NCBI GenBank assembly: GCA_037447605.1
Contig: CM074808.1
Span: 868,001-932,000, forward strand
Length of the DNA stretch: 64,000 bases
Reading direction: 5' to 3'
From: Zygnema circumcarinatum SAG 698-1b
Taxonomy: Eukaryota > Plantae > Zygnematophyceae
A program made the translations under genes and the position numbers. The notes beneath the pieces were generated by a model. The model saw nothing but the letters and a program-made list of their open reading frames with translations. It ran no database searches and was not told the origin of the DNA. This document shows, one piece after another, positions 10,163 to 43,777 of the stretch (the first letter of the stretch is position 1; every line of letters starts with the position of its first letter).

Positions 10163-10460
10163 GGCGGGCGACCAAGAGAGCTCGGGCCCGGACAAGAGGA
10201 CACGTGGCCGGGACAGTGCGGGAAGAGGCGAGCGAGGGAGCGTCGTCTGGGGTTCGGAGGGACGCTGGCTGCCGTCCGATAGGATAACGGGGCGCTCAGA
10301 GCCGTTGGATCGAGCCGGGGAGGAGGAAGACACCGACGGGTCGCTCTCTAGGCGAAGAATCGTCGTCAAGCACCGGAATAATTGTTGGCAACTCGATGAC
10401 TCATGAATGACTTCATTGAAACCTCTTCTTCCTCCTCTTTTTCTTGGTCTTTTGCGCCCT

Positions 10461-10638
10461 GTTCCTCGTGGTTCCCCATGATGCTGATGTTGTCCATGTA
10501 CACTTGATGGCATCATCGCCATCGTGAGATCAATGCCACATCCTTTGCAAGAATCCATCCATCCTGACCAGTTCCTCGTGGTTGTTGTCCATGTACATTT
10601 GATGGCATCATCGCCATCGTGAGATCACTGCCACATCC
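10461..10638. repeat. Local tandem duplication (~70-80 bp units), possibly a reverse-transcriptase remnant
   Basis: gttcctcgtggtt...tgttgtccatgtaca(c/t)ttgatggcatcatcgccatcgtgagatca(a/c)tgccacatcc occurs at 10461-10543 and 10571-10638. The minus strand reads YMDNISIMGNHEE, which resembles a YxDD motif. Confidence 0.55.
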
Positions 10639-11181
10639 ATTCTCCTTCAAACACTGAAATACTTGTTGGAAATTTGATGACGTGTTGAACGTCACCTCCC
10701 AACTTGCGTCGGGTTTCTGGTTTCTGGTTTTTGCGACCAGTTCTTCGTAGTTCCCCATCAGGAACATTCCATTCTTCCTTGTTTCTGGTTCGAGGGATGG
10801 ATTCGGAAGCGACGCAGAAAAACAGCACTGTCGTAGCGTTGCTGCTGACGGTAGCTCGGCCGAACAAGCGCTACATGTAAAAAATATGTAGAATTCTCAC
10901 AGACCACACTCGCTGCCCCTCTCTCTCCCCCTCACGCTCTCCGCCCTAATCTCGTTTCACGGATTTGTGCCCACAGCGAAGGGTCTCCGTACATTTTGCG
11001 TGCCCCCTCGCGCTTTCTCCCCCCGCAGCCATGGCTGCGTGGTTCAGAGGCCCGCCACGTGGCCCGCCATGGCGCCGCCCAGCCGAGCGTGCCTCCCTGC
11101 ACTCCCTTGTTGGCAGTGGAGCCGGAACAAACCCGGGAAAGGAGCAAGCACTCTCTGTGTCGACGCGGGAGGCACGCAGCC

Positions 11182-14100
11182 ATGGCGGGCCTCTTGGAGA
11201 AGGCTTTCGCTCTGCGTTCCTGCAGTTCTCCCCTTGCAGCGGCTGATCCTTTTCTGAAGCAGTTGCACAGAGGCTCTTCACGCCATGGCCGCTTCATCAC
11301 CATACGCTGCGCTGCAAATTCTGTCGAAGTGGATGCACCCGCTACTGCTTCTGTCAGCGACACAGGCAGCAGTGCAGTCAGGTATACGCTTTGCAGGGCC
11401 CTTGCTAGTGATGAAGCTCTTACAGGCGAGGCCCGTACCTTGATGTTTCTCCTCGAACAGGTTGAGGCGTCTCTTTTTCGAAAGAAAGCTCAAACACTGT
11501 TGTGCACTAGCCCTTGTTCTCACACGAGCCACATGCTCATGCAGCTTGTACACTGGTTGGTTGAATTCTGGCCTCCTTTGCCTGCTTGCAGACTTGACGC
11601 AGCTGCAGTTTCCGAGAAAGCAGGCCAGAGACTGGCAGAGTCGCAAGTGCCTGGGAAGAGTCTTGGCATCCCTGAGGCCTCTGAATGGCGCGCTGCCTCT
11701 TTTCCAAAGTCAGCTGAGGAGTTCCTTAAAGCAGTTAGAAGCCCTGCCTTTCAGGAGGTGTTTAGTAGCCCTGTAGGGGCTGCCAGCGCCGCCTATGGCA
11801 TTGTTCGGACTGGATATTTCGTGACTCAGGCCCTCTATACTGCACGAACAATCAACTTTCGGCCTGCAGCAGGAGTCCTCAAGGTAGAATTGGCTTTGCT
11901 TTTGCTTTTGTCCGTTTTGAATGACAGAAAAAGGTGAAAGAGAATGTATTGATAGGCATTAGTGTTATTGTGCTGTGTTTGAGGTCCTTTTTCCAGTAGT
12001 GGGCTATTGATGTCAAGTTGAGTGCATGGATGATCTTGCAAAATTGATGGCAAATTGTCGTCAACCCTCTGAGCATGACATGCAAAGATATGCTTTTCGT
12101 GTCTTCGAGTTGAGAGTATGAGCTTGAATTGTAATGGAATTCAGTTTAGGGAAGTGGACAGAGAGGGGAGCGGAAAAGACAGCCGTAAAAGAAGAGGATG
12201 TTTGATGCAGGGAGGCGTGCCCGCAAACCCAGCGGATATTCTCAAGTTGGTGGAGCGCATGAGTCCAACACTGGGCAGCATTGCTGAGCTTTATCGCAGA
12301 GATGCGGAGAACATACGCAGAGGGTACTACAAACGGCCATTGGATATGGATCCTCGGCATCGGCAGTGGAATCCGCAATACATTCGAGAGGGACTAAACA
12401 TTTTTGTCAAGTTCTCTAATGATACATTGGCAAGGCGTAATCGTGAAGGTTAGTTCCGTGAGTGTTTAATTCGATAATTCTTTTGCTTCTCTCTGCTCGG
12501 GCAGGCGGAAAGAAATGTTCATAAATGAAACTCATTGTCTGGAATGGCAGGCCGGACTGAAACTCGGGAGCAATCGGAAGAAGCTCGACGGAACCCTGCA
12601 CTCTACCCTGAATACTATCTTCAGGTTAAAGGAAACTCCATCCAATTTTGAACCCTGTTCTGACATTTTGCTTCACTTGTATGGCTCTGCTCTCATGCCG
12701 GGTTCCCTACTCACGTTTTGCAGTTGGTCTTCTCATCACTTGTCCACGCAGAATTTCCATTTTCAGGATGGTTGGCTGTCAGAATTCTCAGCAAAGGCGT
12801 ACGACATTGCTACAGAGACCTTTTTCCTAGGATCGCAGGTATCTTGAGTCCACCCTCCCAGCATGCAATGGGGGGAACATAGCATTGGCCTCCTTTGCTT
12901 GTACCATGGAACGAGAAGATGCTCCTCCACTCTCCGTTCGCCTTGGAAGAGCAGAACGTGGAATTCTAGAGTTACGTTGTTGCCTAAACACCAGATTGGA
13001 TTGCCACAAGTTTTTTTTATCTACATTAATCCTCTTTGAATGATCGATAGGCCCACTTTTCTCCGACTCCTTTTGGCGCTTCCGCAGGATGCCATGCAGC
13101 GAGGTGGACTGATCCCTCTGCACTTCTTCATGAAGGGGCGGAGTGAGAAATCAACGCGTCTGCTTGACCTGGCATGTGGAACAGGCCGCTATCTTACGTT
13201 CATAAGGGATAATTACCCGCACATGCCTTTGGTTGGGGTAAGCACTGGGTTGGTTGGAATGTTGGAGAAGCGTCGGCTTGAATAAGGAGTTTCGGGATTG
13301 AGTGGGTTAAGAAATCATTTCTGAATGTTGGTAGAGTTTGACAGGATGTGATGTTTTGGCTTGCATTGATAGTTCTGAATTTCTGACTTCTTGCAGGTGG
13401 ACCTTTCCCCCTTCTATTTGGAAAATGCCCGTGAAAATATGGCTTATTTCACTGGTGAGGTTTGCACTTATAAACGCTAAGTCAACTAAATTCTGGATAA
13501 GACAGCATCTTGCTGCACTTATTCCTACAATATAACTGATTCCCATAGGTTTCGTGGATCTCTGTTAACTTAATGTTTCTTGGCTCTTCTAGTGTTACAG
13601 AGTGTAGCCTACTTAAAATGTAGCAATGGTTTGTCCTGCTCTTAATCAATCAGCGTCTCAAAGAGTGAGCTGAAATCTTGCGCTGCAGATTTTGACAAGC
13701 AAGTGAATGGCGATAGGAGAGTCGCGTGCACGGAATTCATTCAAGCGGCAGCTGAAAATGTGCCTTTGGAAAGCAGCTCTCTCGATGTGGTGGGTGTTTT
13801 CTTAAAAGGATTCGTAGCTAGCAACTTCTTCAAGGATTTTTTCCACAACTTGTACTACTTAAAAAAAAACATATGATGAATTAAGACATATCGTTCATCG
13901 TGCGAGTTTATACCTTCTGCTTTTGTTTGTGCAAGGACCTCTGCTAATGTTAATGACAGGCCTCTGTTAATGTGAAGCATTGGCGTGCAATTTCCCCATG
14001 TTCCTTTCATACATCGTACATATTAATTTGGAGTTGTAAAGCCTGAGCATCTAGTCTCCCCTGTTCCTGTGGTAGTCACCTCAGCATCACAACTGACTCC

Positions 14101-23853: not shown

Positions 23854-26800
23854 ATGGCGGGGGGCAACTCGACGTGTACGTCACGGAAGGCCACGTCCAA
23901 TGGCGTCTTCAGCCACGAGTATCCGATAAATTATGCGGTTCCGCTTCTCACAATTCAGCTGTGTCTCATTATTATCGTTTCTCGGATCTTCTCCTTTTGT
24001 TTGAAGCCCATGCGGCAGCCGCGCGTTATTGCAGAGATTTTGGTAAGGCTCTGGTTATTTTCTCCGCAGTGATTGAGTTCTTCGGTCGGCCTGCTTGGTT
24101 GTCCAGGCGCTGGATGCAGGGCTGGTGCTTTTGTGCTTCTTGACTTTTGTTGTGTTAGTAACTTTTGTGTTGTTAGTAACGCTGAATCAGATGGTCCATT
24201 GAACTTCTTCGCTCTATAAAGGCTAGTGGGAACTAGCTGATTTTGGAACAATCAGGATATTCGTTGGGAAATCCCTTTGCTTTTTTTGTTTGATTATTGT
24301 TAGTAGCCACTTTCTTATCAGTTATTTTCTCGGCTCGCTACCTGAGAGGTGAAGGTGTTTCCAATGCATTTTTCAGGCAGTATAGCTGTTCGTACCTTTG
24401 CAGTTTTTTTACCAGCTGGCTAGTACAACTAGTAATTCACCTTGCAAGAGATTAATCCCCTTACAACAGAAAGGGGAACCTGAGCTTTGAAACTTTTTGC
24501 GAAGAGCCCTTCTGTTTCCTGGCCTCCTGTATTTGCCGGCCTTTGACTTTTTATTTTGAAGAAACTCGAAAGCATATAGATAGTGCTAGAGCAATTGCAG
24601 TGAATTTGGAATTAACGCGTATATGATTTGGCGTCTGTCTTTATGCGGATGCAGTTGTTTGATAAGGACTTCAGTGGTTTCTTGCACTGACGCTTTGTGG
24701 TGTGTTCGATATCATTGTCTACAGGGTGGAATTGTGCTCGGCGCCTCAGTTTTTGGAAAAATTCCTGGTTTCACAGACGACATTTTTCCAACTTCGAGCT
24801 TGACCGTGCTCACCAGTTTTGCAAATATAGGCTTGCTCTTTTTCCTTTTTATGGTGGGGCTGGAGCTAGATATTCGTTCCTTGGTGAAGACTGGGAAAGC
24901 TACTTTATTCATTGCGGTTGCTGGCATTTCCTTACCGTTTGGCATGGGTGTTGGAGCCTCCATCGTTATCCGGCATATTCTGGGCATTAAAAGTGAATTC
25001 TGGTCGTTTGTGGTTTTCATTGGAGTAGCGATGTCTATCACTGCCTTTCCAGTTTTGGCACGTATTCTTGCGGAGCGCAAGCTGCTTACTACCGATGTTG
25101 GGCAGATAGCCATGTCCGCAGCAGCTGTTAACGATGTAATGGCATGGATTCTGTTGGCTCTGGCTATTGCTCTTTCAGCCAAAAATGCTAGCCCAGCAGT
25201 GGTGGCGTACATCCTTCTATGCGGGATCGGGTTTGTAGTATTTATGTTCGTTGTTGTTCGGCCAATCATGGCCATGATTGGACGCCAAATCGTCGACAAT
25301 GAGCCAATGCCAGAGTGGATTGTCGCTGTAACCCTTGTTGGAGTTCTTGTTTCTGGCTTTTCCACCGATGCTATTGGGATTCACGGTATCTTTGGGGCAT
25401 TTATCTTTGGACTCGTCGTTCCAAAGGATGGACCATTTGCTTCAATCATTATTGAGAAGATAGAAGACATCACCAGCATTGTGCTCCTCCCTCTGTACTT
25501 TGCATCCAGCGGCCTGAGCGTAAAATTCGAATCAATGTCGACTAATTCGGTGGGTGTCGTTTTCCTCGTCATTGGGGTGGCCTGCGTCGGAAAGATAGGC
25601 GGCACCTTTTTCGCTGCACTTGCCAGCAAACTTCCTGTTCGAAAGTCTCTAGCGCTCGGCATTCTTATGAACACAAAGGGACTTGTGGAGCTAATTGTTC
25701 TCAATATTGGGCTTCAGAGAGAGGTTTGTACTCCATTCTTTGGCCGCTTTATCCCCTCCCCTCCCCAGCTTAGTAAAGCAAAAATGAAGCTTGACCTCCA
25801 CTTGCAGTACCTTTTAGGAACGTCCCGCTATGCTTTATCGTCTGGAAGTAAGGCAACTTTTTTCATTTTCCGTAATTTGACACAACTTGACTTCAAGGGT
25901 CAACGGGAATCGGCTTTGCTGAAATTTTGTTTCTGTAGTTTTTTTTCACATGGTTCTCAGTTAGCCTGAACATATCTAAAATATAGTGAAAGCGGCACGG
26001 CGGCTTTCCCGTTCTGAACTAGCACTTCAAACAGTTTTGCTACTCGCCCAGCTCCATAGACCTTGCTGGGTGCCGTACAAAATTTCTTCTACTCACTGAG
26101 AGGTGAATGCGTCCGGTGAATTTGCAGGTCATTAACCAGGAGCTGTACACAATTATGGTTATCATGGCACTGGTGACAACATTTATGACAACTCCTCTGG
26201 TTATGCTGCTTTATGAGCCTGCACGCGAAAGGGTTCCTTACACTCTCAAGACAGTGGAAGCGATGACGAAGGACGTGGGCTTGCGCGCGCTTGTCTGTGT
26301 GCATGGCATGAAGTCCATTCCACCAATGCTGAACTTGTTGGAACTCCTTCGTGGCACACGCAAACATCCTCTCAAAGCTTTCATGCTCCATCTTGTCGAA
26401 TATTCTGAGCGTTCCTCGGCCATCATGATGGTGAGTTTTCATTTCGAAAGAAGTTAGGCACCGCTTCAACTGCAAAAGGGTTTGTTTGAAAGGTTGAAAA
26501 TGAGGGGCTTTCAAAATCACCTTCCAGTATTCATATCTCGAATGTAAATTTGAAAGGTTGGAATTTTCTTCGCTTCTATAGTACTAGTCATGGGACATAC
26601 AGTATGGTCCCCTATGGTCTAGATTTCCAAACTTTAACAAGGGCTGACGTACAAAGACATATACTGTAATTCCGGAGTTGTCGTCACAGTAACCACTAAT
26701 GGCCTACTAAATGCAAGTGTGGTGGTGCAACTAAGCTCAAAGATGCTTTGTGGACTATCTCCAGGATACATGACTATGCCTAACTTAACATTATGTTTGG

Positions 26801-28415
26801 CCATGTTTTCAAAACTTGACATAGTGTGTTAAGTTTGGCTCGAGAGTGGTAGTCAAGAATTAAGAGATCGCATACCTTGTTCATCCCTTTAGAACATGTG
26901 GGATTTGTGCATTCATTTTTTTCGTCCTTTGTTAAAGCGCCTGAGATGTGGGTTGCAATGCGATAGAGTGAAGTGTATAAATATGGATCAAGTCAAGCCG
27001 GCTTATTGAAGTTGATGAAATGACTTTTTGTTTTTGTCTTGGCTGGGTTTCAGATCACACGTGTGCGCAGGGATGGAAAGCCCTTTTGGAGCAAAGAAGC
27101 TGAGAATGAGGGACGAGATCAAGTAGCAGTGGTATTCCAGGCATATGCACGCTTGAGCAAAGTGACAGTGGAGGCCATGACTGCCATCTCTCAGTTCTTC
27201 AACATGCACGAAGATGTGTGCAGCACTGCAGCTGACAAGCGCGCCAATCTGCTCATCATACCATATCACAAAGCTATGGTAAGCAATGGACTTCTCTTGG
27301 ATCGCGAAAAATCTGAGGCAAAAACTCTGTTTGCAACGTGTGTTTTCTTGCATATCCAATCTAGCCACATGAGTACAACCGCATTGCAGCTCTTTATCTA
27401 CCGACCCCGTGTCCTCCCTCTCCATTGTTCCCTCAGAATTCTTTCATGACCCTGCCCAAGCCATTGAGGGGAGGCTGATCTTTTTGACTGTGCTCCTTTT
27501 TTGATGCAGGACCTGGACGGGCGACTTGACCTTGGCAATCCGGGATTTCAGTCTGTGAACCGTCGTATTATGAAGGCTTCTCCCTGCTCTGTTGCAGTGC
27601 TTGTTGATCGGGGGTTGGGGGGTCCAACACAGGTTGCTCCGGGCTTGGTTGCACATCACATTGCGGTTCTCTTCTTTGGGGGGGCGGATGATCGTGAGGC
27701 ACTGGCCATAGCGCTGCGTATGGCAGAGCATCCAGGAGTTGCAGTCACAGTCTTTCAGTTCATCGCTAAGAACTTTGAAGACCTTGTGCTTGCTCTTGCA
27801 GCAAGAGGGTCAGAACAAGGGCAGGAGGTAGAAGGAGACTCTGTCCGTGGAGACTCTCTTCGTGGTCGCTCAACTCCGTTCCGAATACCGACTGCTCTTG
27901 ACTTTGATCAGGAGGCTCACTTAGATGCTATCGCTTTGTCAGCTTTAAGGAAGAATGAACGATTCATTTCAGTTCTTGGAAGTGACGAGCGTGCTCAAGG
28001 GGCTGAGGAGGAGGTGGCAGAAAGGAGTACCGTGCCTGATGCCGAAGGCATAGTTCTTGAGGAACGAGAGGTGGACGATGCTTTATCTGCTGCTTTAGAA
28101 GTGGCGAGGGATCACTATGACATACTAATCGTTGGCCGAGGCCGACGACCAGCTCCTCTTGTAGCAGTGGCGACTGACGTACATGCAACGCCAATCTCAT
28201 CTCGTCAAACTGAAGCCTATCCAGGATTGGGCCCTGTAGGAGATGCTCTCGCATTTAGGGACGAGGAGGTCACGGCTTCCATCCTGGTGGTGCAGCAGCA
28301 TGATCCAACCCTAGTGAAGAAACCTCGAGCCAGTAGGCACAGTGCAGTAGAGACAGTGGAGCCAAAGAAGGAAGATGCTGAGAAGCTTCGTGAGGTACAC
28401 CATGAAATACCATAA
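23854..28415 (+). CDS. CHX: Cation/H+ exchanger, plant CPA2/CHX family; 5 exons
   Basis: Exons 23854-24042, 24725-25723, 26128-26430, 27054-27278, 27510-28415, all phase 0. Motifs: KPMRQPRVIAEILGGIVLG, FLFMVGLELD, SITAFPVLARILAERKLLTTDVG, AAAVND, GIHGIFGAFIFG, LLPLYFASSGL, MNTKGLVELIVLNIG. USP-like C-terminal domain with LFFGGADDREALA.A.RMAEHPGV. Confidence 0.96.
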
Positions 28416-30280
28416 GTCCTTAGGGAGTAAAACTGCACTTCTCCGCAATTCAGCATATTTGTTGGGCTGAAGCAAAGTACTACGGTGTTGGGGGGGATGA
28501 AAGTATCGAAACAGGATGGACTTGCCCATTGTGACCCAGTTGTGGAATAAGGGGCACTCAGAGGCTCGATTCACCCAGCATTGCGGGGCGTCGCAACTGC
28601 TCGAATATTGAGGGGGTCTTCTATTCGTGAATTTAAGCTTATTTGGGATGCCAGTTTCAGGATGAATAAAGGGGTTCAGGTGCCACTAGGCTGGCGAGAA
28701 GTATCACTGTTCTGCTGCAGGCAGACATAGTTCTTGGGAGGCATGCGGAATGGCGAAGGCAGTTTTTCTGTACTGTCCAGCATATCGGGTCCACCCAACT
28801 GTACAAGAACCCGTTAGTTTACTGCTTTGTATATTCATTAGCGATTTGCCTGAACTTGGGTAATGGCAAGTACGCGGCTTACGCAAAGTGTTGGGGGCTT
28901 AAGGAAGGAATGGCTTTCGAGAGAGGAATGCGTCTGATGCAGTAAGCGGGGTAGAGGGCTCGCAGCTCCGTTTCTTGTCTTACTTGTAGACTTTTATCAC
29001 ACAAGTGAAGTTCATAACTCCGTTCCTGTTATGAATTTTAGACATTTGTCACTTAAAAAAAGTTATTCCATTCGTTGTAAATTTTGTGCCCTTGTTGTTT
29101 TTCAAAAGAGTGGGCCTTCTGCCTTAGTCTGGCACAAGCGGCATATGTCGATTGATGATACAAAGCACACGCATGCATGTACCATGGCCATTGGATGCCA
29201 TCCGTACAGTACACTAGATGGACCAGACTTGAAAAATTTCCACCCAGCAAATTTCCAAATACAGTACCATGTTCTGAAATTTCCAGGCCCATTCCCGAAC
29301 CTGTTCGGCGCAAAATTGGAGGGCGGCGGCGGACTAAACGGCAACTACAACTAAACTAAGCGCTCGCGTGGCGCTGACGTGGCATGGAGTCTACCGTAAT
29401 GAGACAAGCCCTAAAACTGAGAACGGGTAACGGCGGAGGACAAGGAACGTCATAACTGGTTTTGTCGCATTCTGCGTCACGTGGGCCTTCTGGGCCGAAG
29501 CCGAAGGGCACTTGACGATCTGTGTCCCCTCGCAGGACCGACCGTACTGTTATACCGTATCATTCCGTACATCCCATTGAAATTGAGAAACTGAACAAAT
29601 TTTACTTTTTGGATTTGGGCACGATCTCATAGTCCAACTTTCTTCAACTTTTGCTGACGCGGTCCAACTTTGCTGACGCAGTCTCGCGCGTGCGGACGGT
29701 GACGTATTTGGAGAACCCCTCCCGAGTTCGGGTCTCGCCTTCGTACCCAAAATACAAAAATGGAATACCAATTAGAAGTCGACACGTGGCATACTACCGC
29801 GGGCACAGCTCCAATCCCTCCAGAATATCGTTTGCACGATACAGTACGTGCGAAGATATCTACTATGCGATATTACACGATACGATATGCCCTAATGGCA
29901 TGTCCGCCGTCCGAGCCGCACTTGGGGGCGTCCGTACGGTACGAAAACAAACAGTGTTGTCCGTACGCTCCATCTTTCCGTACGGTCCGCTCCTTTTGGC
30001 CAGATCCCATCGACGGACGACTTTGCCAAACAGACGCCCTCGTGGCACTCAGCCAGTCAAGTTGATAGCAAGAATCAGTACAAGTGATACTATTGTATTA
30101 GGTATAAGTCGTTTGCAGAGTACCCGGTTGTTGTTGCGAGCGAAAATCTGCAGCTGGTCAATCGCTTCCCTGATGGTGGGCGCTTCCTTTCCCTTTCCAG
30201 ACGCCTGGGAGCAGCTTCCTGCAAGGGCGCCATGGCCATGGCCGGGAGAAGCTTGCAGCTTCTGGCACTGGAGAGAAGTG

Positions 30281-30327
30281 GAGGAGGAGGAGGAGGTGGA
30301 GGAGGAGGAGGAGGAGGAGGAGGAGGA
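30281..30327 (+). repeat. (GAG)n trinucleotide microsatellite upstream of the kinase ATG
   Basis: About 15 GAG/GTG units. Confidence 0.9.
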
Positions 30328-30527
30328 TGAGGCATGCGATAAGAAGAGAACCATAGGATAGAGGGCGGGTTGGGGCGGGATATCCTGCTGGCAGTTATGA
30401 CGGGGAAGCAGGTGCAAGTGGCCGCCAGTTGTCGACCTGAACATGCTGTGGGGGTTCTCTTTTGAGGACTTCAAATATATTTACATAAAGGGAGGGATAG
30501 AATTGACGGGGCGTCTGCTCGGAAGCC

Positions 30528-33500
30528 ATGGCTCCCGTGCCCTTGTTGAGGAAGGGGGCTGTTATTGACAGGCGGTTTGAAGTTGAAAAGAAGATAGGCG
30601 AAGGAACTTTCAGTATCCACTTCTGGTTTTAATCTCAAATTCTTAGAAATATGGGAAGGTAACTGGTAAGTTTCGGTTGACGTTTAATTGCCGTTTCTGC
30701 GTATTGTTTCTGTTATTTTTGACTGAAAGCAACATATTCCTAGCCTTTGAAACTCCCGAAACTTCAGTAGGCTCTTATTTAGAACGCTGTATAGGGGCGA
30801 GAAGAATGTGTGCTCAGGGAATGCTGCCAGTGTATCTGGAAGAGTGGATTGGTAACTGGTCCTTAACTCATATCTCTAGGCGAAATTTATCGTGCTCGAG
30901 ACGCAGTCTCTGGCATGTTGGTGGCTGTTAAGGTAGAAAAGGAAGAAAGCGTCCTTAAATGGGAGAGCAACGTGCAGAAGCATCTTCAGGGTATGTCTTT
31001 GTGCGCCATTTATGACTTTGTCAGGTTTCACTCCTGAGAAACTAACCTGTTTGGCTTCTGTCGATTTTTATCATTCATATTGTTTATGTAACTATGACTA
31101 AAACATTCATTCGTTCATGGTTAAGCAATGCACCAATTGGCATAACGAATGTGACTCATAGGTAAGAATACGACAAAACGAATTCTTTGTCTTTGTCTTG
31201 ATAAGAGCCACGAGGTTTAAAGACGAGTTCCAGTGCCTATTCATATGTTGGCCTTTTTTTGGGTTATAATTCGGGAGTTTACGTAGCGGTGTATTTCCCA
31301 ATAACTTCGAAAAATAAGGAAGATGGTTCAAGAAGGATTTTGTACAAAATTTCGAAAAGTTTCGTTCGTATGCATTTTTTATAAAACTTGCTGTGCAGTT
31401 AAAAGGGTTGCAGTCTGTGCAGCTGTAGATCATTTGAATTCAATGTTTTTTGCTAATGATAAGGTTCCAAACTCTGGGTTCTCCATGAGGTGCAGACTGC
31501 GAGTACATTTGTAGACATGTCCAATTCGGAATTTTTGAGGACCACAATTTCCTAATTATGGAATTACTAGGTGAAAGCCTGTCAGATTTAAGACGTAAAC
31601 AGCCTGGCGGGAAGTTTTCAATTGATACAAGTTTGCGACTTGGAATTCAGGTAGGCAGCTTCAACATATGAGCTGCAAGTTTGTATGACCACCAAAGGGC
31701 TTGCCAAAGCTTCTCGATTAGTCTTCATCTAGATTTGGGGCTGTGAATTCTGGCAGTGGGCTATTTGTCGGCAGGTATCCTTTCCGCCTAACTCATTTCT
31801 GGCATATCATTGCATGACAGTTGTTGATGGCTTTAAAGGGAATGCATGAACGAGGATATCTGCATCGAGACGTCAAACCTGTAAGTTGCTGCTCAATCTT
31901 CTCCACTGCAAACATGCTTCATTCTGAATTTGAGGACCGTACGGTGAATAAATTCCGTAGGTTGCTCGTACAGGACAAAAAGCATTAGCGTTGCCACGTT
32001 CCTTTCAACTTGTTGTGTTCTACGTCGATGCAAACGACGCTTATCCTATGCAACTTGTCCCAACCTTATTATGCTTCACAGCTGTTTGCGCTCTTTTTGT
32101 TACTGTTAACTGAGTGGAGCTTTCAACGATGGCTTGAGGTCGGCAGTGTGCTATAGGAGCTGATTCTTTAGCCGTCTCTGTTTGATGCTGATAATGCATT
32201 TTGTTCAGAAAATTCTTTCTGTTTTTGAGACAGGCTGATATGATGCAATAGCTAATATGGAATCTATTCTCTTCAATTGAGTTTCACAGTCTTTCGCGTA
32301 AAACATTGCAATAATTCATGATCTGAATACATGCGATCTTTAATCTCATTCTCTTGTGTTGGTGCAACAGTCAAATTTTGCGATAGGATATGGCCCAAAA
32401 CATAGGCAGTGCTTTGTTATCGACTTTGGTCTATCAAAGCGGTATAAAAGCCACAGTGGGGAAGTTCATCAGCCTCGCAAGGTTGCAGATTTCCGTGGCT
32501 CATCCGTGTATGCCTCGGTCAATGCCCACCTGCTGAAGGTATGTGCATTTATGTGTTTCGACATCGTGTGGCTCTTTTCTCTAATTGTGTTTTCTTGTTT
32601 GGCCCCACTTTTGCAGTTGCTGGTTTCCTTATAAAGTTGATGAACTTGGCTTTGTTCACGTTTGCGTTGTAGATCACTTACCAAAGGGAAACTGTGGTCA
32701 GTTGTGGTGGGAGCGTGATTACGCTGCGGATCTCTTTCTGTCTTGTTGCCATTCTTGATGTCTATTGAAGGTAGTTCGTTCAAGGGATGCAAGTGGCAGT
32801 ACTAGTTTCTTAGCAGGACTTATGGCTATCAGCTGTCAGAAATGGAGCCACAAATGGTGTTACTTGCCGTGCTGCTTATGGGGGCTTTCGGTTTTTCGGC
32901 TTCTGCAGGAATTGGGACGGAGAGACGATTTATGGTCATTGTTTTTCGTAATTGTGGAATTCCTGGAAGGGGATATCCCATGGCGGGCAGTAAACGATAA
33001 GGTGAAGGACAATTCTTGGCTTAGGTGGTAGGCGAAGTTTCATCACAAGCTAATACCAAAATATCCATCAGATACATCCTTTTATCAAAATCACTGAGTT
33101 ATTCCAGTGAGCTTGCGGTCAGATATATTCGTTTTATGCTACAGTAACGGTCATGTATCCGACAGCTTGTATATGAATGCGGTTATCACGGACCATGAAT
33201 GAATGTGCTGGGGATTAGCAATCATAGTCCAAAGAAACTGTCATTCAACATATATGATTTCATGTTGTGCAGCTGCATTAATGCGAATTACTTCTATCAA
33301 ACTGATGACGACTGGTCATTATTTATTTCTTTGTTTATCTTTACCGGGGACACACATCAAACTGCATTGTTCATCAGCATATTGTGTAGCTAACCAGTTA
33401 CAATAATCGATTAGGATGATGCTGTCGAATTGCTCCGTGTGGGTCGTTGTAGAAAATTGTGGGACTCACTTTTTTCCGTGCACTTCACTTGCTGTACTGT

Positions 33501-36500
33501 GGTGATGGGTTATTTCTACAGGAGAAGGTGAAGCATATGAAACTCTATTATACGAAGAAGCCTCAAGAACTTTTTAGAACAATGGAGCTACCTGACGAGT
33601 TGTTGGTGAGCAACTCCTCCCTCCGTGAACACTCGAGTTGTCTGCATATGACTCTGGTCGATGCCAATCGTTTCTATTTTGATTTCTGTTTAGAATTATT
33701 AACGCCATCCTGGTCACGGTTTGTGTCGGGTAGTTTTTTATCAAACACCTGCAATCACTGGAGTTTGCCGATGCGCCGAATTATGATCACTTGATACAAC
33801 TATTGGAAGCGTTCCGCACTCGCTTGGGACTCAAGGTACGGTGCGCCTGAATAAATTTTCACTTGAGCATGCTATTAATTTATTTCTGATTTCACTAGTA
33901 TTTATTTTCTCTAAAGCTGAGAATCTTGTGAGGCACTGCAGCAATGTTCTCGCTGAAGTTGACGAGGTTGGTTGTCTGCGACAGGATGACCTGCCGTATG
34001 ATTGGGAAACTTTAAATGCAGACATTTCTACCACAAGTTCGAGGTGTGTTGGACTTTGAATTTTTTTTGCTATGGCATTCTGAAGCAAGGGAACGGTGAA
34101 TGTGTTCTGTTCACTTGCTTGAACATCGAAAAGAGAGGATGGGGGAGGGTGTGTGGGGAGAGGGGGAAGGAAGGGGGGGGAACTGAAACTGAAAGAGCTG
34201 AAGTATGCTGGCACTATGGTTGAATGCAGGCATCAAATAAATGATCATGGACCAAGTCTGTATCAGCGAACAATGGGGAAGCCTGACCTTCCGGGCCTTA
34301 CCGTGTGTTCAAGCAATTCTCCCAACATTGGCAGCAATGTCGAGGAGTCAAAAGAACCTGCAATTTCAACAACAAAGCATAACGAACTTCAAAGCCCTGG
34401 AAGGGGAGCTACTGCTCATCAACAACAGTACTCTGTAGGAGCTGATGCATGCCTACCTAATGGTCCATCCCAGTCAGCTTGCTCGCCAGAAGTAGGCAGA
34501 TACGCTGTCTCGCAGCTACAGAACCCTATTATACGTTGTGCATCTTTAGCCAGAGACATAAACAAAGATGAAGCTTCACGAGAGTTTACAGATGAGCAGA
34601 GAAAGAGACCTTTAACATGGGATAGTACTCCCTCCCCCCGTCCCCCTAGGAAAGACGAGGAGGGAGTTCCCTGCTACCAGCGAGACAATGATTCAGACAA
34701 GGGGAGCAGAGAAAGAGTAAACTATCATACTTACGATAGAGGGATAAGACGAGATCGGCGCTTGGCTTATGATTATCACGCTGAGCGCATAACAGATAAT
34801 AGGACAAATCCTCGCAGTAATGATCGAAGTGATCGTCCTGGGCCACCTTTCTCCAGCTTTGGAGAGAGGAAGAGGGATAGGCGACTTTGTATCGAGGTGC
34901 TCGAAAATGGTGAATGCAAACGAAGTCAATGTGATTCTGCACATCCATTAAGGTAAATGGAAAACTCTTTACCTGCCGCAGGGAGTACCCTTTTATCAAC
35001 AGCTAGCTGAAAGATGACAGGAAAGGGAGGAGTTCGAATGAGCTGCGTTTGGTCTGTCTCCATGGGGAACAGTTAAGTAGAGTATATCTCTATCTCAGCG
35101 ACATTTAAGTTAAGTTTAAGTTGCCAAGGAATAGCTCACTAATTATTCTGTAACGACGGAGGGTTTCCCCAATTTCTTGAGTATTTGGTGAAAAAAGCAG
35201 TGTTCTCGATTGTTTGCCTTCGGTATTGTATGAGTGTCTTGTACCTACTGCAAAAAAAAGGGGTAATCACCTTGTTTGAAAGTAGCTGATAGGGAATCTA
35301 TGCACTTGGTTCAGAAGTATAGGCGCTATGAGGAGAATCATTTGCTTTGGGAGACGTTTGATGAATTTAACCCTGTATGTTGTTGACATCTTGCACGAGA
35401 GGAAAGACTTGTTTCCAACATGCAACAGCTATGACATCGGATATGTCTCGTCTACTGCTTGCCCCAGCTTTGTGATAAAGCTGTTACCACTGACTTCAGG
35501 AACTATCGAGGCTAATCTTCCTTCAACTTTAGTTTGTCATTGATCTCGGGAGACTTTTGACTTGTGTGTGCAGAATGACAGGGGAGGTGGCGACAACACT
35601 TTGTTTGGACTTTGTGAATGGATGCTGCCCTTATGCAAGCAGAGCATGCAGCAAGTATCACTGGTTGACTGAAGAGGTGATTCGCCATCTCTTGCCTGTT
35701 TGGAGTGAAGCCTGAGAGGGGGAGCGGATTGTTTGCACCTTCCATGGTCTGTAGATTTCTGACAAATGCCAAGAGCTGTTAGGTTAGGTCGAGCTATTCT
35801 GTCTTTACGGTCTTTCTCGATAGCTAGGATCAATAACAACCATGTTGGCTATCGTCCTTCCTATAGAGTGTCTGGGAGTTTGTTTGTTGAAAAATACTCA
35901 AAAGGTGTGCAAGGCTTGCATAGACACTGTGATGGCTTTGGAGCCTATTGTAATTGCTTTGAAGCAATCATTTAGCATATTTGTTGTTGTTTACGCCATT
36001 GCAATGCGCTACTGTGGCTTTACGACAGGCTGCTTGTTAGAGTCCATAATATGAGCATGCTCTCCAGTTGTAGACCTTCTCTTGCAAGAAAAAAGGAATT
36101 CTCCGTTTTCTAGCTGAAGGACTTGTAGCTTGATGGCTGAAATGCACCCTTGGACAGAAAGGTGCCACATGAACTTGCTTTTTTGCTGGATTGCCAAACT
36201 TATAGTAGTTTTTTGTGAATACGATTTAATGCTGAGTAATGTAATAGTTGCTTGTTTATCATCGAACTTCAATTGGCACTCTGTTTCTATTTGCTCAGAA
36301 TATTGGGTCATTTTAAAATGAGAATCTAAGATATGTGGCATGGTAGCAGGAAGAGACGTTTCGGAGGACGGGGCGGCTACCGGCAGAGGCTCGCTGTGAG
36401 AAGGATCAAAGCTGGCAACATCGATATAGTGATCGAGTGGGCAGTGTTGGAAAATCTCCAAGGAGGGATGCAAAGGGGGAACATAAGGGAGAAGTGTATG

Positions 36501-39500
36501 GGATGAAGCAAGCATGCAGGGAACGGCGACAAGCACCGGAAGAAACTGCTATAGAAAAGAAGGGCAATGGAAACGGGAAGCCCATCAAGCGGAGTGACCC
36601 AGACTCCCCTTACACTCCTATGCTCTGCAAGGGCGCAAGAGTTACTAAAGCCCCTTCCGAACTTACTAGCGTGATGAATGGAAAAGTTAGTGTTGTGAAA
36701 CATGCAGAGAAATTGGGAGAATTAGAGTTCAGGCAAACAAATGCAATGGAGGTGAAACGGCTCAAGCAAGGCAGTGATGTGAAGAGTATGGATGCAGTCA
36801 CTCCTCTCCTACAGGTTTCATGTGTGACATTGGAAAAAACAGATGGCAATATTCCTCACTCGACTGTTGTTGACAGTTCCCTCGCCCATTCTTTCTCAAA
36901 AGCATCGAACTTAATAAAAGAGAAGAGTCGGAAGGACTCGGTCTCAACAGCAGAGGCAGCAGAAAGTAGGGATCATTGTGGAAGTGCAATCGAGGATAGC
37001 CAAACGATCAAAGGTAAGACAGTTTTTTACAGCTTGACTCGTCATGAATATCTAGTAGTTTGTTTTCCTTCATTGGCACATTTCCAATCAAAGAAAAACA
37101 ACGTTTTAGGTGGGATGGGGTAGATGGGAAGGTATGGGGATGTTACGGGGCCAAAGCCGAAAACAGATGGATATGCGGAAGCAATAGAAGGGATCATTTT
37201 GAAAAGCACGCACAGCTCCAATTCATGTACAGGGAACTTGACAGTCACAAAACGGGTGGGTCCATGTACAGATGTTATAGAATCTGGCAGCAGGCTTGAA
37301 TCGGCAGTCACATTACACAGTGATCCCAGTGAAGTTCTGAACTCTGCTGAAGCAGGACGAGGGATTGGAGGGCCCATGCATCCGTCCCACTGTTTCAATA
37401 AAGTCGTCAAGTATGATACGTGTGACAGTGACATAAAGCAAGCAGGAGGGAATAAAATGCTGTATGTGATGAAAGAGAATGCCGATCGAGCCCTCCTTAC
37501 AGAAAGGATGTCGACTTGGCCAAGTAGCAAAAAAGAGCAATCTGGGAATCTGACTGAAAGTAGGGTAGGCCCACAGTTGAAATGCGAACGGCCTGATGGC
37601 GAGGACGGAATGCAAGATGTCAGAGTTGCTGGAGTAGGGGGCAATATTGGCTTCTCCGGTACAGCGATAAAGGTTGAGCAGATCGGCCAACAAGTGGCAC
37701 GAAGCGATAGGCACAGGGAAGAAGCATGCACAAAGAGCCGGGATAGGGAAGCAGACGGTGGGAGGGGGACAAGGTTAACACCTGGAAAGAGACTGCATGG
37801 AGCCTGTGGAAATTCAGTTGAGCATTCCAATGATTCCTGTCGGCAGGTTAGAAAGGCTCGCAAGCCTCTGTCATCTGCTGCTTTGGGGAGGTTATCAGTT
37901 GGGTTAGGTTTCTCCAGAGACAAGTGCCAACAATGGGGTATCCTCGACCTCTGCTTGAAAGGGGAGTTGGTTGATGTTCCCGTAACGGGCCCGCACCGCG
38001 AGGGATACTCAAACTCGTCCCATGTGTCTTCATCCGTTATCTTGTCAACCCGGCTTCCGTTGCTCGTCGAAATCCAACACTGCGAAACTCAGTGTCAGTT
38101 GAAGCATCCTTCTGTCTGTGGAAACAGCCGCAGCAATGGCAAATGTGGTTTTGAAGGTAGATTCACAACCCACAGCTCATTCTCGTGGTCAGTCCTTCAG
38201 TGCTTATTTTGGAACAGCTTTACATCTGAAGGGAGCAATCACCTCTGGGGGCGGTTTTTCTGAAGTCCTGAGAAACCTCCTATGGGCACATGTGGTCCTA
38301 GTGGTTTCTGGTAAGAGGAAAGATTATGTTCGTGCTGGAAAGGTAAGAGGCCATAAAGTGGAGGCTGTTTAGAGTGCATATTTGGGCTGCTCATAGTAAA
38401 GCGGCTGTTGTGCAGGTCCCAGGAATCGCAACTGCCATGGCGATACTACATCATTTATCCCAAATTCTCTCTATGGAACTGAAGCAAGCATTGTAAGCAT
38501 CCACTATCCTTTAAAATGTGCATGGGCAAAGATGCAACAGCTCTTGTGGACTTGCGCTGCTTACTTGTATTTCCTGGATTGTTGTCAGTGTTTGCACCTG
38601 AATGTGTCCAGATGGCTTTTTTCCTCTGTGGTTGCATGTCCTTCTTCAATTATCGTGTGCGTGTAATGCTTCTCCCTTGGCTTTTTGCACCGTCCTCCGA
38701 CTTGTTAGCAGGGGCTGCTCAGACTCCTTTCCTCAAAGGCTCATTTGTCAAAAAGACTACTGCTCACCTTGGTTCATTCGGTTGTTAGGTCCCAAATGAT
38801 GAGAAGCTGAAAGCTGACAAAAGTCTTCCTGGAGTGAGCCCTGTACGGCTCAAGCGGACTTCTGCCCGGGGAGGGAGAGAGAGTCCCGGCCTTCCTCCTG
38901 CAGGCCGTACGGAAGTTGGGAGGCTGACTTCCAGACATGCGACCACTCTTCAGAGGGCTAAGCAGGTACAGGACTTTGTGTCTGAACCCTTCAAATTTGG
39001 GGGACTAGCTTTTGATGTACATCATACTGTTTAGGTTGTTTCGTTCTGCTTTTATTCCTTTTGTTGTTGGTATTTGTGAACATTTAAGCTGGAAAACTCT
39101 TCTCTCTGGATCGATTTTTTTTTTCTTTCGTCTTTAGCAGTGATTTCCGCCAAATCTGCAGAAGCCTAGCTATCTGAAGGCAGGGTATCATGATATGAAT
39201 TTCGAATTCTTTGTTCAATCGGCAGATTTGTTTGCCTAAACACAGTGCAGCCATATTCCACACTCCAAATCACAAGATTTCGTCCTCCAAACAGTCTCTC
39301 CTTTTTCTTTCTATTTTTGATCGGTGGAAAAATTCTCATACCCAGAAAGATTGGTTCCCTCACAACACAATTCTAGTTTGGTCCAACTCAGAAGAGCCAA
39401 CTGTCTTGCAAGAGCAGCCATATGAAACCGAGCCTGCTCCTTGACTTCCACATATGAGAAAACATATGTTGTCTGCTTTTCTTCTGATTGTTTCATGTAA

Positions 39501-42500
39501 TTTGTTAATGAGCCCCATGCCAGATTTATCGCTCACATGATCTAGTTAGTCATGCTTATATAATAGAGCAAGTTCATCCTCTGATGCAGGTTGCTGCTCA
39601 GGCCAAAGTCAGCAATGCAAGTCCGAAGGGGGAATTTCAGTATATTGCCGGTTCGCTTGTATCTCCACTACCTTCGGCAAAAGGTGAGTTGCCTTGACCT
39701 GCCTCAAGTAGTAGGGAGAAGGATCTCCCTCCCTCCCTCCCTCCCTCTTTCCCTCTCTCCTCTGGGTTTACTTTAATTGTGAAAAGGGTATATTGATAGT
39801 ACCCCTGGTGGTGTTTGTTTGGTGCTAATGTTTGTTCAGAATAAGGGCCTTTCTGTAAAGGATCAACTATTTACACTAGTTTTGCTGTCTCAGGTGGTTT
39901 GAAGAGAAGGGATGCTTCTATAAGCAAAGGAGTCGTGCCTTTGACCGGTAAGGAAAAGGTGCGAGCTGCAGAGCAGGTATTAGTCAAGTTTGGACCGAAT
40001 AGCTGCACAACACCAAAAGGAAGCTTGGCTAACATTGGTCAAAGCAAGGGGCTGACTACCAACAAACTGAAGTCTGCACAGAGAAACCAATGCAGATCAG
40101 TAAAAGCGATGGAGGGTCCTGTTTTATGCAAGCTGAAATCTGGAAGTCAAATAGATCAGGCCTCACCTCAAGGAAGGGGGAAGCTGAAAAATGGAGCAGT
40201 AGAGGTACATGTACGAGGTGATTTAACGGACCAGAAGAAAGGGTTGATGGGAACAGAGAGCAGACTGCGCAGTTCTGTGAAAATGAGTGGTGGGAAGGTC
40301 AACTGGGAGGATTTGGGAGGCAGGGGCGGAAGCAATTGTAGTTTACTAAAGGGTAGGGAAACGAGTATGGATGAGATGAAGAGTCCGAGAGAGCCATCTG
40401 CTGGTTTAGAAAAGAAAAGAAAGCTTTCTAGCTTCAAGGAAGGAAGCAAATCAGACGTTTCCATGAATGTAGAAGTGGGGAGACAGCTTGCTTCCGGAGT
40501 CATGACCAACATGAGTATTGGACACCTTGACTCGAAGGAAGTAGTACAAATTAATAAGCGTCAAACTCCGAAGGATCCGATGTTGGCTAAGAGCGTTAGG
40601 AAAGAAGAAGAAAAAGAATTTAAGCTGAGAGCCAAAGCAAAAGGGGGTAATGCTGCAAACAAGAGGCAGAGGCTACCGGGGGAAAGGGTGACAGTTAAGA
40701 GAAAGGTACAAGGCAGCGCGCTTGCCGATGGTAATGTCAGTAGGAGAAATGAAGAGGATATTATTTCGGGCCTGAGCAACAAGCAGGAAAAGCAGGGGGG
40801 TGAAAGGGAGAAAGCGTTAGCATTTAGGAATACAGGAGCTCATAGCCCTACTACTTCGTTGCCGAAAATACTGGAAAAACCACTCCCAGCCTCTGAACAA
40901 CACGAAGCTGTGCTTGCATTTGCTTCCAACCATTTGAAAGCAGGTGGGAAGAGAAAAATTGTTGGAGTGAAGAGAGAGAGGGAGGAGGCAACTGCTCTGG
41001 AAATGGGAAACAGAACCGTCCTTGACCTCTCTTCACCGAAGCGGGAGAGAACCTTAAGGACTGTAAGGCGACGTGATTTCCGGCATTGTATACAAGTAAT
41101 AGTGGACGAGCAGTCTGCAGGAAACCAAGCTTTGGCTGAGGGTCTGTCCTCGCATCCGGCTGAAGGTGGTGGGCCTAGCGAGAGTAGAGTGCAGCTATTG
41201 AGGCCTTCAGAAGATACTGCCACAACTGTACCACAGGAAAGTGGCACTGGAAGGGGGTCGAAAGCGGATGCAGGATCGGCGGAAGTGCAAGGGCCTGAAA
41301 CGTTGCACCTTGTACTTTGTGAGAGAGAGATAGGTTGTACTATTCATGCCTCTTTGGATCAAAACGGGGCTGCTTTTGAGTCGATGACTTCGCCCCAAAA
41401 GGCATCTGCAGTGGAGAATGAGAGCGACAGCGACAGTTTTTCCAGCTTGTTCAAGTGAGTTGGGACATTTGTTTTCTTGTCTAAAGTCTGACAATAGAAC
41501 ACTCCAAATGCTGGAGATGGGCGTGAAGTTTTGCTTTTGTTTAACGTATGGATGTCAAGCGTGGTGAGGAATAACTGAGGCTCCTTGTGGGTCATTGTGT
41601 GGACTGTCGTCACTCATCTTTAGGGAGTTCTATTCGTTATGGTCTAGGGAGACGTATTCATGACGGTTACCTTCCCTATGAATCTAGTCTCAGATATGTT
41701 TAATGACATCCCTCGTCCTTGAAATATCAAATAAGCTTATTGCCAGGCTACTTCCAGTCACAATCGACATAGTCGAGGTCTTTGAATGTGTTTGAGGGCA
41801 GGGCCTCCTCCTTCAACTACGAGTCCGTAATGGTAACATAACAGCACTAAACCCTCTATGGCTCCTTCCCACAAATGCCATGAAATTGCTGACGAATGTA
41901 TTCCAAAGCTTCTTGGCCCTTTTTCAAGCCGATCCGCCCTCTTTCCTTGATGGTTGTGACAGAGAGGAAAATGATTCGGACGAGTGCGATGAAATACAAG
42001 GACCTGCAGCTTCTGCCTTTAGTGCCGAAAGGGCTTCAGATGAGCCCCCTTGCCTTGCAGGATGTGAAAGTGTTGGCACGGCTGTAGGGGGGGGCTCTGA
42101 AGCAGACCCCGAAGGAGAGCAAAGAAAGGATTCACATGAAGATGAGGAGGCACAATTCTTCGAGTGCAGAAGCAGACCGGCGGTACGCTCGCGAAGTTTG
42201 AGACGGCTTTCGAGCATTCATCGATTGAACGACGAGCATGTAAAGAGGAGAATGAACGAATCTGAAATGAATAGCAGGCAGAGTGGAGATTGTGCAGATG
42301 GTCAGTGGTCGGCAGAGAGCAGGGAAGTGGGAGGAGACCTTTCTACTGTCAAGTCTGACGGTTTGCAGAACGAGTACAGGTCCGTACCAGCAGTGATCCA
42401 GTCTTGCCTTGGAGGTTTTGCTTGTGAAACTAGTGTGTGTTTTGTAATCAAGAATAGATTACATCTATTGACCCGTGTGGCTTGTCTATTTGGGGCCTTA

Positions 42501-43777
42501 GGTGTCACTTCAATTGGAGCCACTATGCTATACTACCACCTGGGCTTTCTCCACAGCCTCAATCTTTCACTGAGTTGTATCGGGAGATAACGGATGTCTT
42601 TATAAAGGTGAGTATACTTCTTCAGGTTTGGAATTCGGATTTAGGTTAAAAGCCCCATTCGCGGTTTGAAGGGGTTTTCATATCATTGATGCTTGGTGAC
42701 TGAATTCGAAGTTATCTTCTTCCCCATTCCACCTTTTGCTGAGCAGCTGAGTTGAGGCTCCTTTCCTTCAGGCTCTTGAGGAGGTCTACTACACTGAAGT
42801 TAAGTGTGGAATATTGGGAGAGGATGGCGTTCCTCGCAACATTCTGAAGGAGTTGTCCGCCCACCCGCAGAGGACGAGAGTGTTTTCAGGGGTAAGCACC
42901 GTTAGCACCCTGACTGTACTGTGGCAATATCACCATTTTTTTTGTATTAGCTTGCATGTCTGTTCGACTTGCTTCATCGTTCAGTCATTTCCATATTCAT
43001 ATCCCTCCCTTATTGTTTCGTTGTGATTATTTTTTTTAGATATTAACTTAATTGTTAACTCTTCCTCTCCCACCTGATGCAGGACCACAATGCAGACACT
43101 CAGAATCTGGTCGTTACTGATGATGATGGGCACCTCTACTGGTCGCTCGTTCATCCAAACGATTGTGATGAAGTCCCCCTCTCCCTGCTCACTGTTCTGC
43201 GCTCCGACTTGAGAGAATTGGTGAGGAAGCCAACAGCGGCATGAGCACTGCATTTGCTGTTGCAGAACACTCGCATTTGACAAATGGGCAGATTAACTAT
43301 CGCATTGTATTTCCTGATATGCAGGGTATTTGTCCGAATTTGGTGGAGTTTGAGACACTGGATGCAGACGGAAGCAGAGCAATGACATCTCTTACTCAGC
43401 AGCCTTGGCAATGCCTTTGTGGAGAGGACGATGCAGCTCAGCAGGATAGTGACTGCTCTCATCGCGAAGGTAGAGGCAGAAGTGTGCAATCCAATGGGCG
43501 TAAAAGTGTCGGAGGACGGAAAAGCACGAGAGCTTTGGATACCTCTTCGCACTTGGATATGGAGACTGGTGACCCAAAAGAGTGGGCTGCAAAGGTAGGC
43601 TTACAGCAGGCGGCAGTGGTCAACAGAAGGGGACGAGGCCGTGGTCGACCAAGAGGCAGAGGGAGGGCACAAAGCAGCTCTGTTGCGAGAACTCCACCAC
43701 GGCAGTTGGAGGGCTCCTTGGAAGAAGTTGGAGCAAGCCTTGGCGATCAGGGGGTGAATATCCCTCCAGATGAATGA
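30528..43777 (+). CDS. Giant CK1-group kinase most similar to tau-tubulin kinase (TTBK), with tandem CCCH zinc fingers and a long low-complexity C-terminus. The kinase portion is firm; 3' extent and single-gene status are provisional
   Basis: ATG 30528 (gccATGG). Spliced kinase domain: KIGEGTFSEIY, VAVKVEK, VLKWE, LIMELLGESLSDLRR, LRLGIQ, HERGYLHRDVKP|SNFAIG, IDFGL, DFRGSSVYASVNAH, ELGRRDDLWSLF, EFLEGDIPWR, DDLPYDWE. Further AG/GT-bounded ORF blocks at 34229-34952, 35574-35676, 36350-37013, 37124-38157, 39895-41455, 41930-42300, 42557-43777. Some junctions (37.1, 38.2, 41.5, 42.3 kb) were not resolved. Confidence 0.72.

Follow-up and report, generated by a model that had tools for sequence, protein, structure and literature searches.

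A predicted gene of the streptophyte alga Zygnema circumcarinatum that probably couples a tau-tubulin-kinase-type domain to two CCCH zinc fingers

Tau tubulin kinases (TTBKs) have been studied almost only in animals, in connection with tau, TDP-43, and cilium assembly. The family has been reported from animals and slime molds, and no TTBK was reported from yeast, Chlamydomonas reinhardtii, or Arabidopsis, in which CK1s were the nearest homologues (Magley and Rouhana, PMC6743461); plants are not listed among TTBK holders elsewhere (PMC3218828). TTBK2 consists of a CK1-type kinase followed by ∼900 residues that set localization and substrate recruitment (CEP164, EB1), and the RNA-binding protein TDP-43 is a TTBK substrate (PMC4407412). 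Here, we analyzed a 64,000-nucleotide stretch of the genome of Zygnema circumcarinatum SAG 698-1b (hereafter, the window; GenBank assembly GCA_037447605.1, contig CM074808.1, positions 868,001 to 932,000 of the forward strand) and describe a locus at positions 30528 to 35715 on its + strand. On balance, we read this locus as one predicted gene for a TTBK-family kinase with a long tail and two CCCH fingers set 12 residues apart.

The kinase domain is predicted to span approximately residues 15 to 294 and belongs to the CK1 group, with the catalytic residues intact (GEGTFS loop, VAVK, HRD, DFG, and S-V-N). The core signatures of that group were all found, namely LHRDVKP/SNFAIG (the HRDVKP and SNFAIG halves straddle the exon 4/5 junction), VIDFGLS, and YASVNAH, in which S-V-N replaces APE. 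In addition, exon 5 encodes DFRGSSVYASVNAH, and exon 6 encodes GRRDDLWSLF. We compared the kinase with the PDB exon by exon, and exons 3, 5, and 6 were long enough to be informative alone. Exon 5 matched TTBK1 (51.9 bits; E = 4.3 × 10−13; residues 138 to 191; ∼57% identical) well above the best CK1, which was the rice CK1-like structure 3sv0 (34.4 bits; E = 1.7 × 10−7). Exon 3 likewise matched TTBK1 (41.0 bits; E = 1.2 × 10−9; residues 68 to 117), against 16.9 bits for the best CK1-type kinase (E = 0.07). For exon 6, the best match was TTBK2 (39.9 bits; E = 1.3 × 10−9; residues 202 to 232, which are 195 to 225 in TTBK1 numbering; ∼61% identical), whereas the best CK1 reached 20.8 bits (E = 0.0027). 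Summed over the three exons, the score was 133 bits to human TTBK1/2 and 72 bits to the best CK1. Because three separate exons each score far above any CK1 in the PDB, we consider the assignment of the predicted kinase as TTBK-type, not ordinary CK1, to be well supported. The same assignment had been made in an earlier sequence-only reading of this DNA, which also contrasted the kinase with plant MUT9-like kinases through a motif, HGDVKPEN, that it assigned to them.

Exons 2, 7, and 8 were too short to carry a family signal of their own in the PDB searches. Exon 4, at 20 residues, is an exact fill of TTBK1 residues 118 to 137, which lie between the matches of exon 3 and exon 5. Exons 3 to 6 thus tile TTBK1 in order, and the splice model follows a solved TTBK colinearly.

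Wider searches with exon 5 returned no second kinase of this layout. A metagenome scan recovered 80 loci, all of them CK1-type protist kinases (HRDIKPEN or HRDMKPDN) at most 52% identical to the query, and a CCCH pattern occurred in the kinase open reading frame (ORF) of none of the 80. One metagenome contig, L074, was considered as a kinase-CCCH fusion and rejected, given that its TIS11-like fingers are encoded in a separate ORF ∼8 kb from the kinase. The contig itself carries a TIS11-like tandem CCCH pair (1004 to 1213) upstream of a CK1-type kinase ORF (9389 to 11419) on the same strand. A word search with exon 5 (56-residue query; proteins of 31 to 98 residues eligible) gave no candidate, and in a feature atlas the nearest entry to exon 5 was an unnamed 61-residue cluster without taxa (similarity, 0.95).

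The gene model was read from positions 30000 to 36500 together with a list of ORFs. It comprises 11 exons on the + strand and predicts a protein of 593 residues from a coding length of 1,782 nucleotides (593 codons plus a TGA at 35713 to 35715; Table 1). The start codon stands in a GCCATGG context, and an in-frame TGA lies 24 nucleotides upstream, at 30504. All 10 introns are GT-AG, range from 128 to 621 nucleotides, and are consistent in phase; their donors, acceptors, and G+C content are alike throughout. Every motif and coordinate quoted in the sequence-only reading was present where that reading had placed it. Judged from the DNA, 30528 to 35715 is one intact gene that is predicted to be spliceable through canonical sites into the 593-residue protein. 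Separately, ∼200 nucleotides 5′ of the start codon, a (GGA)n microsatellite occupies 30280 to 30330. Translated on the two strands, it gives poly-Gly, poly-Glu, poly-Pro, or poly-Ser ORFs and is probably noncoding, as part of the promoter or the 5′ untranslated region.

Between the kinase and the fingers lies a linker of ∼230 residues rich in Ser, Pro, Arg, and Asp. Exon 10, which encodes most of the tail, falls within a 267-codon stop-free frame; exon 9, which lies 186 nucleotides upstream, leads into this frame in the correct phase. The open frame and the matching phase together indicate that exon 10 codes for protein and is most simply read as belonging to the kinase gene. The final 90 residues of the stretch that runs through finger 1 contain 18 Arg and 11 Asp, and RD, DR, RS, ER, and RR dipeptides are concentrated in the last 100 residues of the exon 10 product. 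These counts agree with the earlier description of an Arg/Asp-rich stretch ahead of the fingers. Two basic clusters were also found in the tail (RRDRR at residue 479 and RKRDRR at residue 519, the latter immediately preceding finger 1). Among tail motifs of the TTBK2 type, SxIP is absent from the tail, and short proline motifs alone are present (PSPRPP at 440 and PGPP at 509). SxIP and the CEP164-binding motif are, however, markers of TTBK2 function and not of family membership.

When the 240 residues of exon 10 were compared with 1.84 billion representatives in a full phmmer search, no match at E ≤ 0.001 emerged, the query itself included. The collection lacks this genome, as gathered from an exon of the neighboring CHX antiporter gene, whose best relative is only 73% identical (Logan contig, SRR9302961; Sphagnum, 62%), and the nearest sampled kin are therefore distant. 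At such a distance, significance would be beyond the reach of a disordered linker with a finger of 19 residues. The blank result means that the tail sequence is not widely conserved and says nothing on whether the architecture is unique. A tail without relatives in this search would also suit two genes, one encoding the kinase only and ending near exon 8 or 9, the other a small separate CCCH gene made of exons 10 and 11. We regard this division as highly unlikely, since exons 9 and 10 are so close and agree in phase, there is scant room for a promoter and a 5′ untranslated region, retention of intron 8 or 9 would truncate the protein exactly at the end of the kinase domain, and long noncatalytic tails are also found in animal TTBKs (PMC4407412).

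Both fingers conform to the spacing C-x6-14-C-x4-6-C-x3-H. Across the six frames of the 64-kb window, a CCCH pattern search returned three matches against a shuffle mean of 0.6, and two of the three are these fingers, which lie 660 nucleotides apart on one strand in splice-compatible frames. The search recovered them with the spacings and at the positions claimed for them previously. The third match, CLIRTSVVSCTDALWCVRYH (24656 to 24715, +), falls within a transmembrane exon of the CHX gene and was set aside as a chance occurrence. The sequence-only reading had also described the second finger as invisible among the ORFs; this did not hold, as a 52-residue ORF at 35557 to 35715 is seen once ORFs of at least 30 residues are listed.

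The fingers are predicted to be joined by removal of intron 10. The donor (ttaag/GTAAAT) lies at 34952/34953 and the acceptor (tgtgtgcag/A), with a pyrimidine-rich run, at 35573/35574; splicing to TTGACTTGTGTGTGCAG/A would restore the frame directly onto canonical finger 2, through to the terminal TGA. At the level of the DNA, then, the proposal that a phase-2 intron joins the fingers is borne out by GT-AG borders, the phase, and one restored frame. The TAA at 34954 to 34956 had been named as a point that could undo this join. A phase-2 intron that begins AG/GTAA always reads AGG TAA, so this TAA is donor consensus and a weak sign against splicing. Scaled from the shuffle mean of 0.6, the chance of a CCCH pattern on the right strand and in the right frame within ∼1 kb is ∼0.002. 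We consider the join of exons 10 and 11 likely and a single transcript with both fingers probable, as predicted from these sites. If, instead, the mRNA retained intron 10 or were polyadenylated within it, the protein would end in ...CDSAHPLR with one finger, and the exon of finger 2 would be unused or alternative. An in-frame TAA directly after exon 10, a TGTAA motif at 35149 inside the intron, and the length of intron 10, the longest of the ten at 621 nucleotides, are in keeping with such a product; but the TAA belongs to a strong AG/GTAAAT donor, any phase-2 GTAA intron yields such a stop, and from the acceptor the reading frame runs on exactly into a canonical CCCH finger, at the low chance given above. 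We therefore think retention unlikely.

At the 3′ end of the two-finger gene model, exon 11 contains a possible alternative donor (GAG/GTGATT at 35676/35677) that could lead to further exons. Downstream, very long stop-free frames without Pfam matches occur on the + strand at 36347 to 38260, 39899 to 41455, and 41880 to 42587; the first is made of 36347 to 37120 and 37124 to 38260, which share a frame and are separated by one stop. They may represent a large gene for a disordered protein or exons reached from the donor at 35676.

Several results weigh against a two-finger TTBK that contacts RNA. Finger 1 scored 16.4 bits against Pfam zf-CCCH (PF00642; E = 0.009), under the cut-off of 20.5, and finger 2 had no PF00642 match and resembled just the Torus domain, in its CCCH portion (E = 0.09). 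In the PDB, finger 1 gave weak matches to MBNL1/2 alone (E = 0.3 to 0.9), and finger 2 gave weak matches to TTP (tristetraprolin) and MBNL1 alone (E = 0.55 to 1.8); every one of these had E > 0.1 and is not significant. The muscleblind resemblance is accordingly a lead and not a family membership, and the same applies to the feature atlas, where the nearest entries to exon 10 were zf-CCCH clusters (similarity, 0.84; a lead only). Finger 1 has no aromatics at the RNA-stacking positions, which follow Cys1 and precede His (CIEV..., ...DSAH). No relative of the tail was found, so conservation lends nothing to the exon 10-11 join, which is predicted from the DNA, or to the fingers. The TTBK placement is built on pairwise exon scores. 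Finally, the link to RNA, like the function that we propose from it, is pure inference.

Some of the same observations would fit a protein that is made as modeled but whose CCCH pair is a zinc-stabilized protein-interaction or autoregulatory module instead of an RNA binder. Some CCCH fingers bind proteins or poly(ADP-ribose); here, both fingers lie under the Pfam cut-off, and finger 1 combines its missing stacking aromatics with an unusual x8-x4 spacing. In contrast, finger 2 has the canonical C-x2-F-x2-G-x-C...Y-H, with aromatics at the RNA-stacking positions (CLDF..., ...KYH), the solved fingers that come closest bind RNA (MBNL for both fingers, TTP for finger 2), and RNA-binding tails typically have an Arg-rich flank. 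Taken together, we find a role apart from RNA somewhat unlikely and continue with the reading that the pair would bind RNA.

By analogy with animal TTBKs, whose tails serve as address labels (that of TTBK2 binds CEP164 and EB1), we assume that the algal tail would follow the same logic. A tail ending in CCCH fingers would take a TTBK catalytic domain of the generic kind to RNA or to RNA-protein particles, and the kinase recruited in this way would phosphorylate proteins that sit on that RNA as well. Targeting to the nucleus or to speckles could be added by the Arg/Asp-rich stretch and the basic clusters. A parallel may be drawn with TDP-43, a substrate of human TTBK1/2 that itself binds RNA, except that here the RNA contact would be made in cis.

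To our knowledge, conjugating algae have neither cilia nor centrioles. It is conceivable, though we hold it as a tentative and rather doubtful proposal, that a TTBK lineage survived in streptophyte algae and was redirected to RNA, away from the centriole and microtubule, through the gain of a muscleblind-like CCCH pair. If true, this would be the first described TTBK-family kinase that reads RNA directly and phosphorylates proteins on the same RNA. A clear TTBK-type kinase in a close algal relative of land plants would in itself widen the known range of the family and, if the alga is without cilia, would mean that the family does not depend on them. A kinase with RNA-binding-type fingers of its own would also be a compact, testable case of phosphorylation wired to RNA particles in cis, a layout that would recall how TTBK is connected with TDP-43 in human disease.

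Table 1. Predicted features of the kinase-CCCH gene model; positions are those of the window
Feature	Position	Strand	Description
Exon 1	30528..30612	+	Start codon, N terminus, start of Gly-rich loop (IGEGTF)
Exon 2	30880..30990	+	Remainder of Gly loop (S-EIY), VAVK lysine, alpha-C glutamate region; PDB matches to generic kinases only
Exon 3	31496..31650	+	Kinase hinge, alpha-D/E region; TTBK1 match
Exon 4	31821..31880	+	Start of catalytic loop (GYLHRDVKP); 20 residues, LLMALKGMHERGYLHRDVKP; Pkinase profile positions 107-126, E = 0.012
Exon 5	32371..32538	+	SNFAIG, DFG, activation segment, YASVNAH; TTBK1 match
Exon 6	32909..33001	+	GRRDDLWSLF...PWR, subdomains IX-X; TTBK2 match
Exon 7	33522..33605	+	C-lobe helix; placed by frame and GT-AG; alone without significant PDB match
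Exon 8	33734..33835	+	End of C-lobe; placed by gene model; alone without PDB match
Exon 9	33985..34043	+	End of kinase domain (DDLPYDWE), start of linker; ends in phase 2, joins exon 10 frame
Exon 10	34230..34952	+	Ser/Pro/Arg/Asp-rich linker, PSPRPP, RRDRR and RKRDRR, then finger 1
CCCH finger 1	34888..34944	+	C-x8-C-x4-C-x3-H, residues 526-544, CIEVLENGECKRSQCDSAH
Intron 10	34953..35573	+	621 nucleotides, phase 2, AG/GTAAAT ... TGTGTGCAG/A
Exon 11	35574..35715	+	12-residue spacer between fingers, finger 2, 17-residue tail, TGA stop
CCCH finger 2	35602..35661	+	C-x7-C-x6-C-x3-H, residues 557-576, CLDFVNGCCPYASRACSKYH

The kinase-CCCH gene lies downstream of the plant-type CHX antiporter gene (24623 to 28412, +), which was recognized by its Pfam domains (Na_H_Exchanger, E = 8 × 10−46; CHX17_2nd; CHX17_C). 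Elsewhere in the window, on the − strand, is a SERCA-type P-type cation ATPase, with its C-terminal part (Cation_ATPase_C) at 2034 to 2924 (E = 1 × 10−50) and a gene that reaches ∼10558. A SERCA-type pump together with a plant-type CHX fits a streptophyte nuclear genome and speaks against contamination. A 154-kb ENA contig that carries a CHX homologue had no TTBK-like exon within 10 kb of that homologue. The lack of conserved synteny beside the CHX homologue of another genome, like the lack of tail relatives in our search, would be expected of a silent or very young lineage-specific chimera, for example an unexpressed product of exon shuffling with no maintained function. Such an origin is very unlikely in our view, given the open frame in each of the 11 exons, the canonical sequence at all 20 splice sites, and the full set of intact catalytic residues.

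Literature searches on tau tubulin kinase, CCCH, and plants found no paper on a TTBK combined with CCCH fingers, and none was found on TTBK together with CK1-Pl. Papers on kinomes and domain architectures yielded nothing on a kinase plus CCCH.

Among described systems, the predicted algal protein is most readily set beside the TTBKs of animals and slime molds (TTBK1, TTBK2, and Asator). It shares with them a CK1-group catalytic domain (∼57 to 61% identical in exons 5 and 6), the signatures HRD-x-KPSNF, FRG...YASVNAH, and DDLWSLF...PWR, and an N-terminal kinase followed by a long noncatalytic tail, which in TTBK2 sets localization (PMC4407412). It differs from TTBK2 in the length of the tail (∼300 residues, compared with ∼900 to 1,000), in the missing SxIP, and in the predicted terminal pair of CCCH fingers, a feature missing from the list in the TTBK2 review. 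A further difference is the host, a streptophyte alga; in Chlamydomonas and Arabidopsis, no TTBK was reported to be found (PMC6743461). Compared with CK1 and the plant CK1-like and MUT9-like kinases, the algal protein is alike in kinase group, in the S-I/V-N that replaces APE, and in having an N-terminal catalytic domain with a variable tail; however, its informative exons score 17 to 24 bits lower to CK1, including rice CK1-like 3sv0, than to TTBK1/2. On the side of the fingers, MBNL1/2 also have two close CCCH fingers that differ in the gap between the second and third Cys (x4 in one, x6 in the other), and a muscleblind-type pair combines x7-x6-x3 and x7-x4-x3 fingers with a short fixed spacer. 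Both algal fingers have MBNL1/2 among their few PDB resemblances, and finger 1 has no others. The algal pair is nevertheless reversed, with the x4 type first, its finger 1 has x8 instead of x7, and its spacer is 12 residues; the matches are insignificant (E = 0.3 to 1.8), and the algal protein has one pair only, attached to a kinase. SRPK and CLK, kinases that act on RNA-processing proteins, some with Arg-rich low-complexity regions, offer a functional analogy only. In contrast to the predicted algal kinase, they belong to the CMGC group and reach RNA particles by protein docking and not through zinc fingers of their own.

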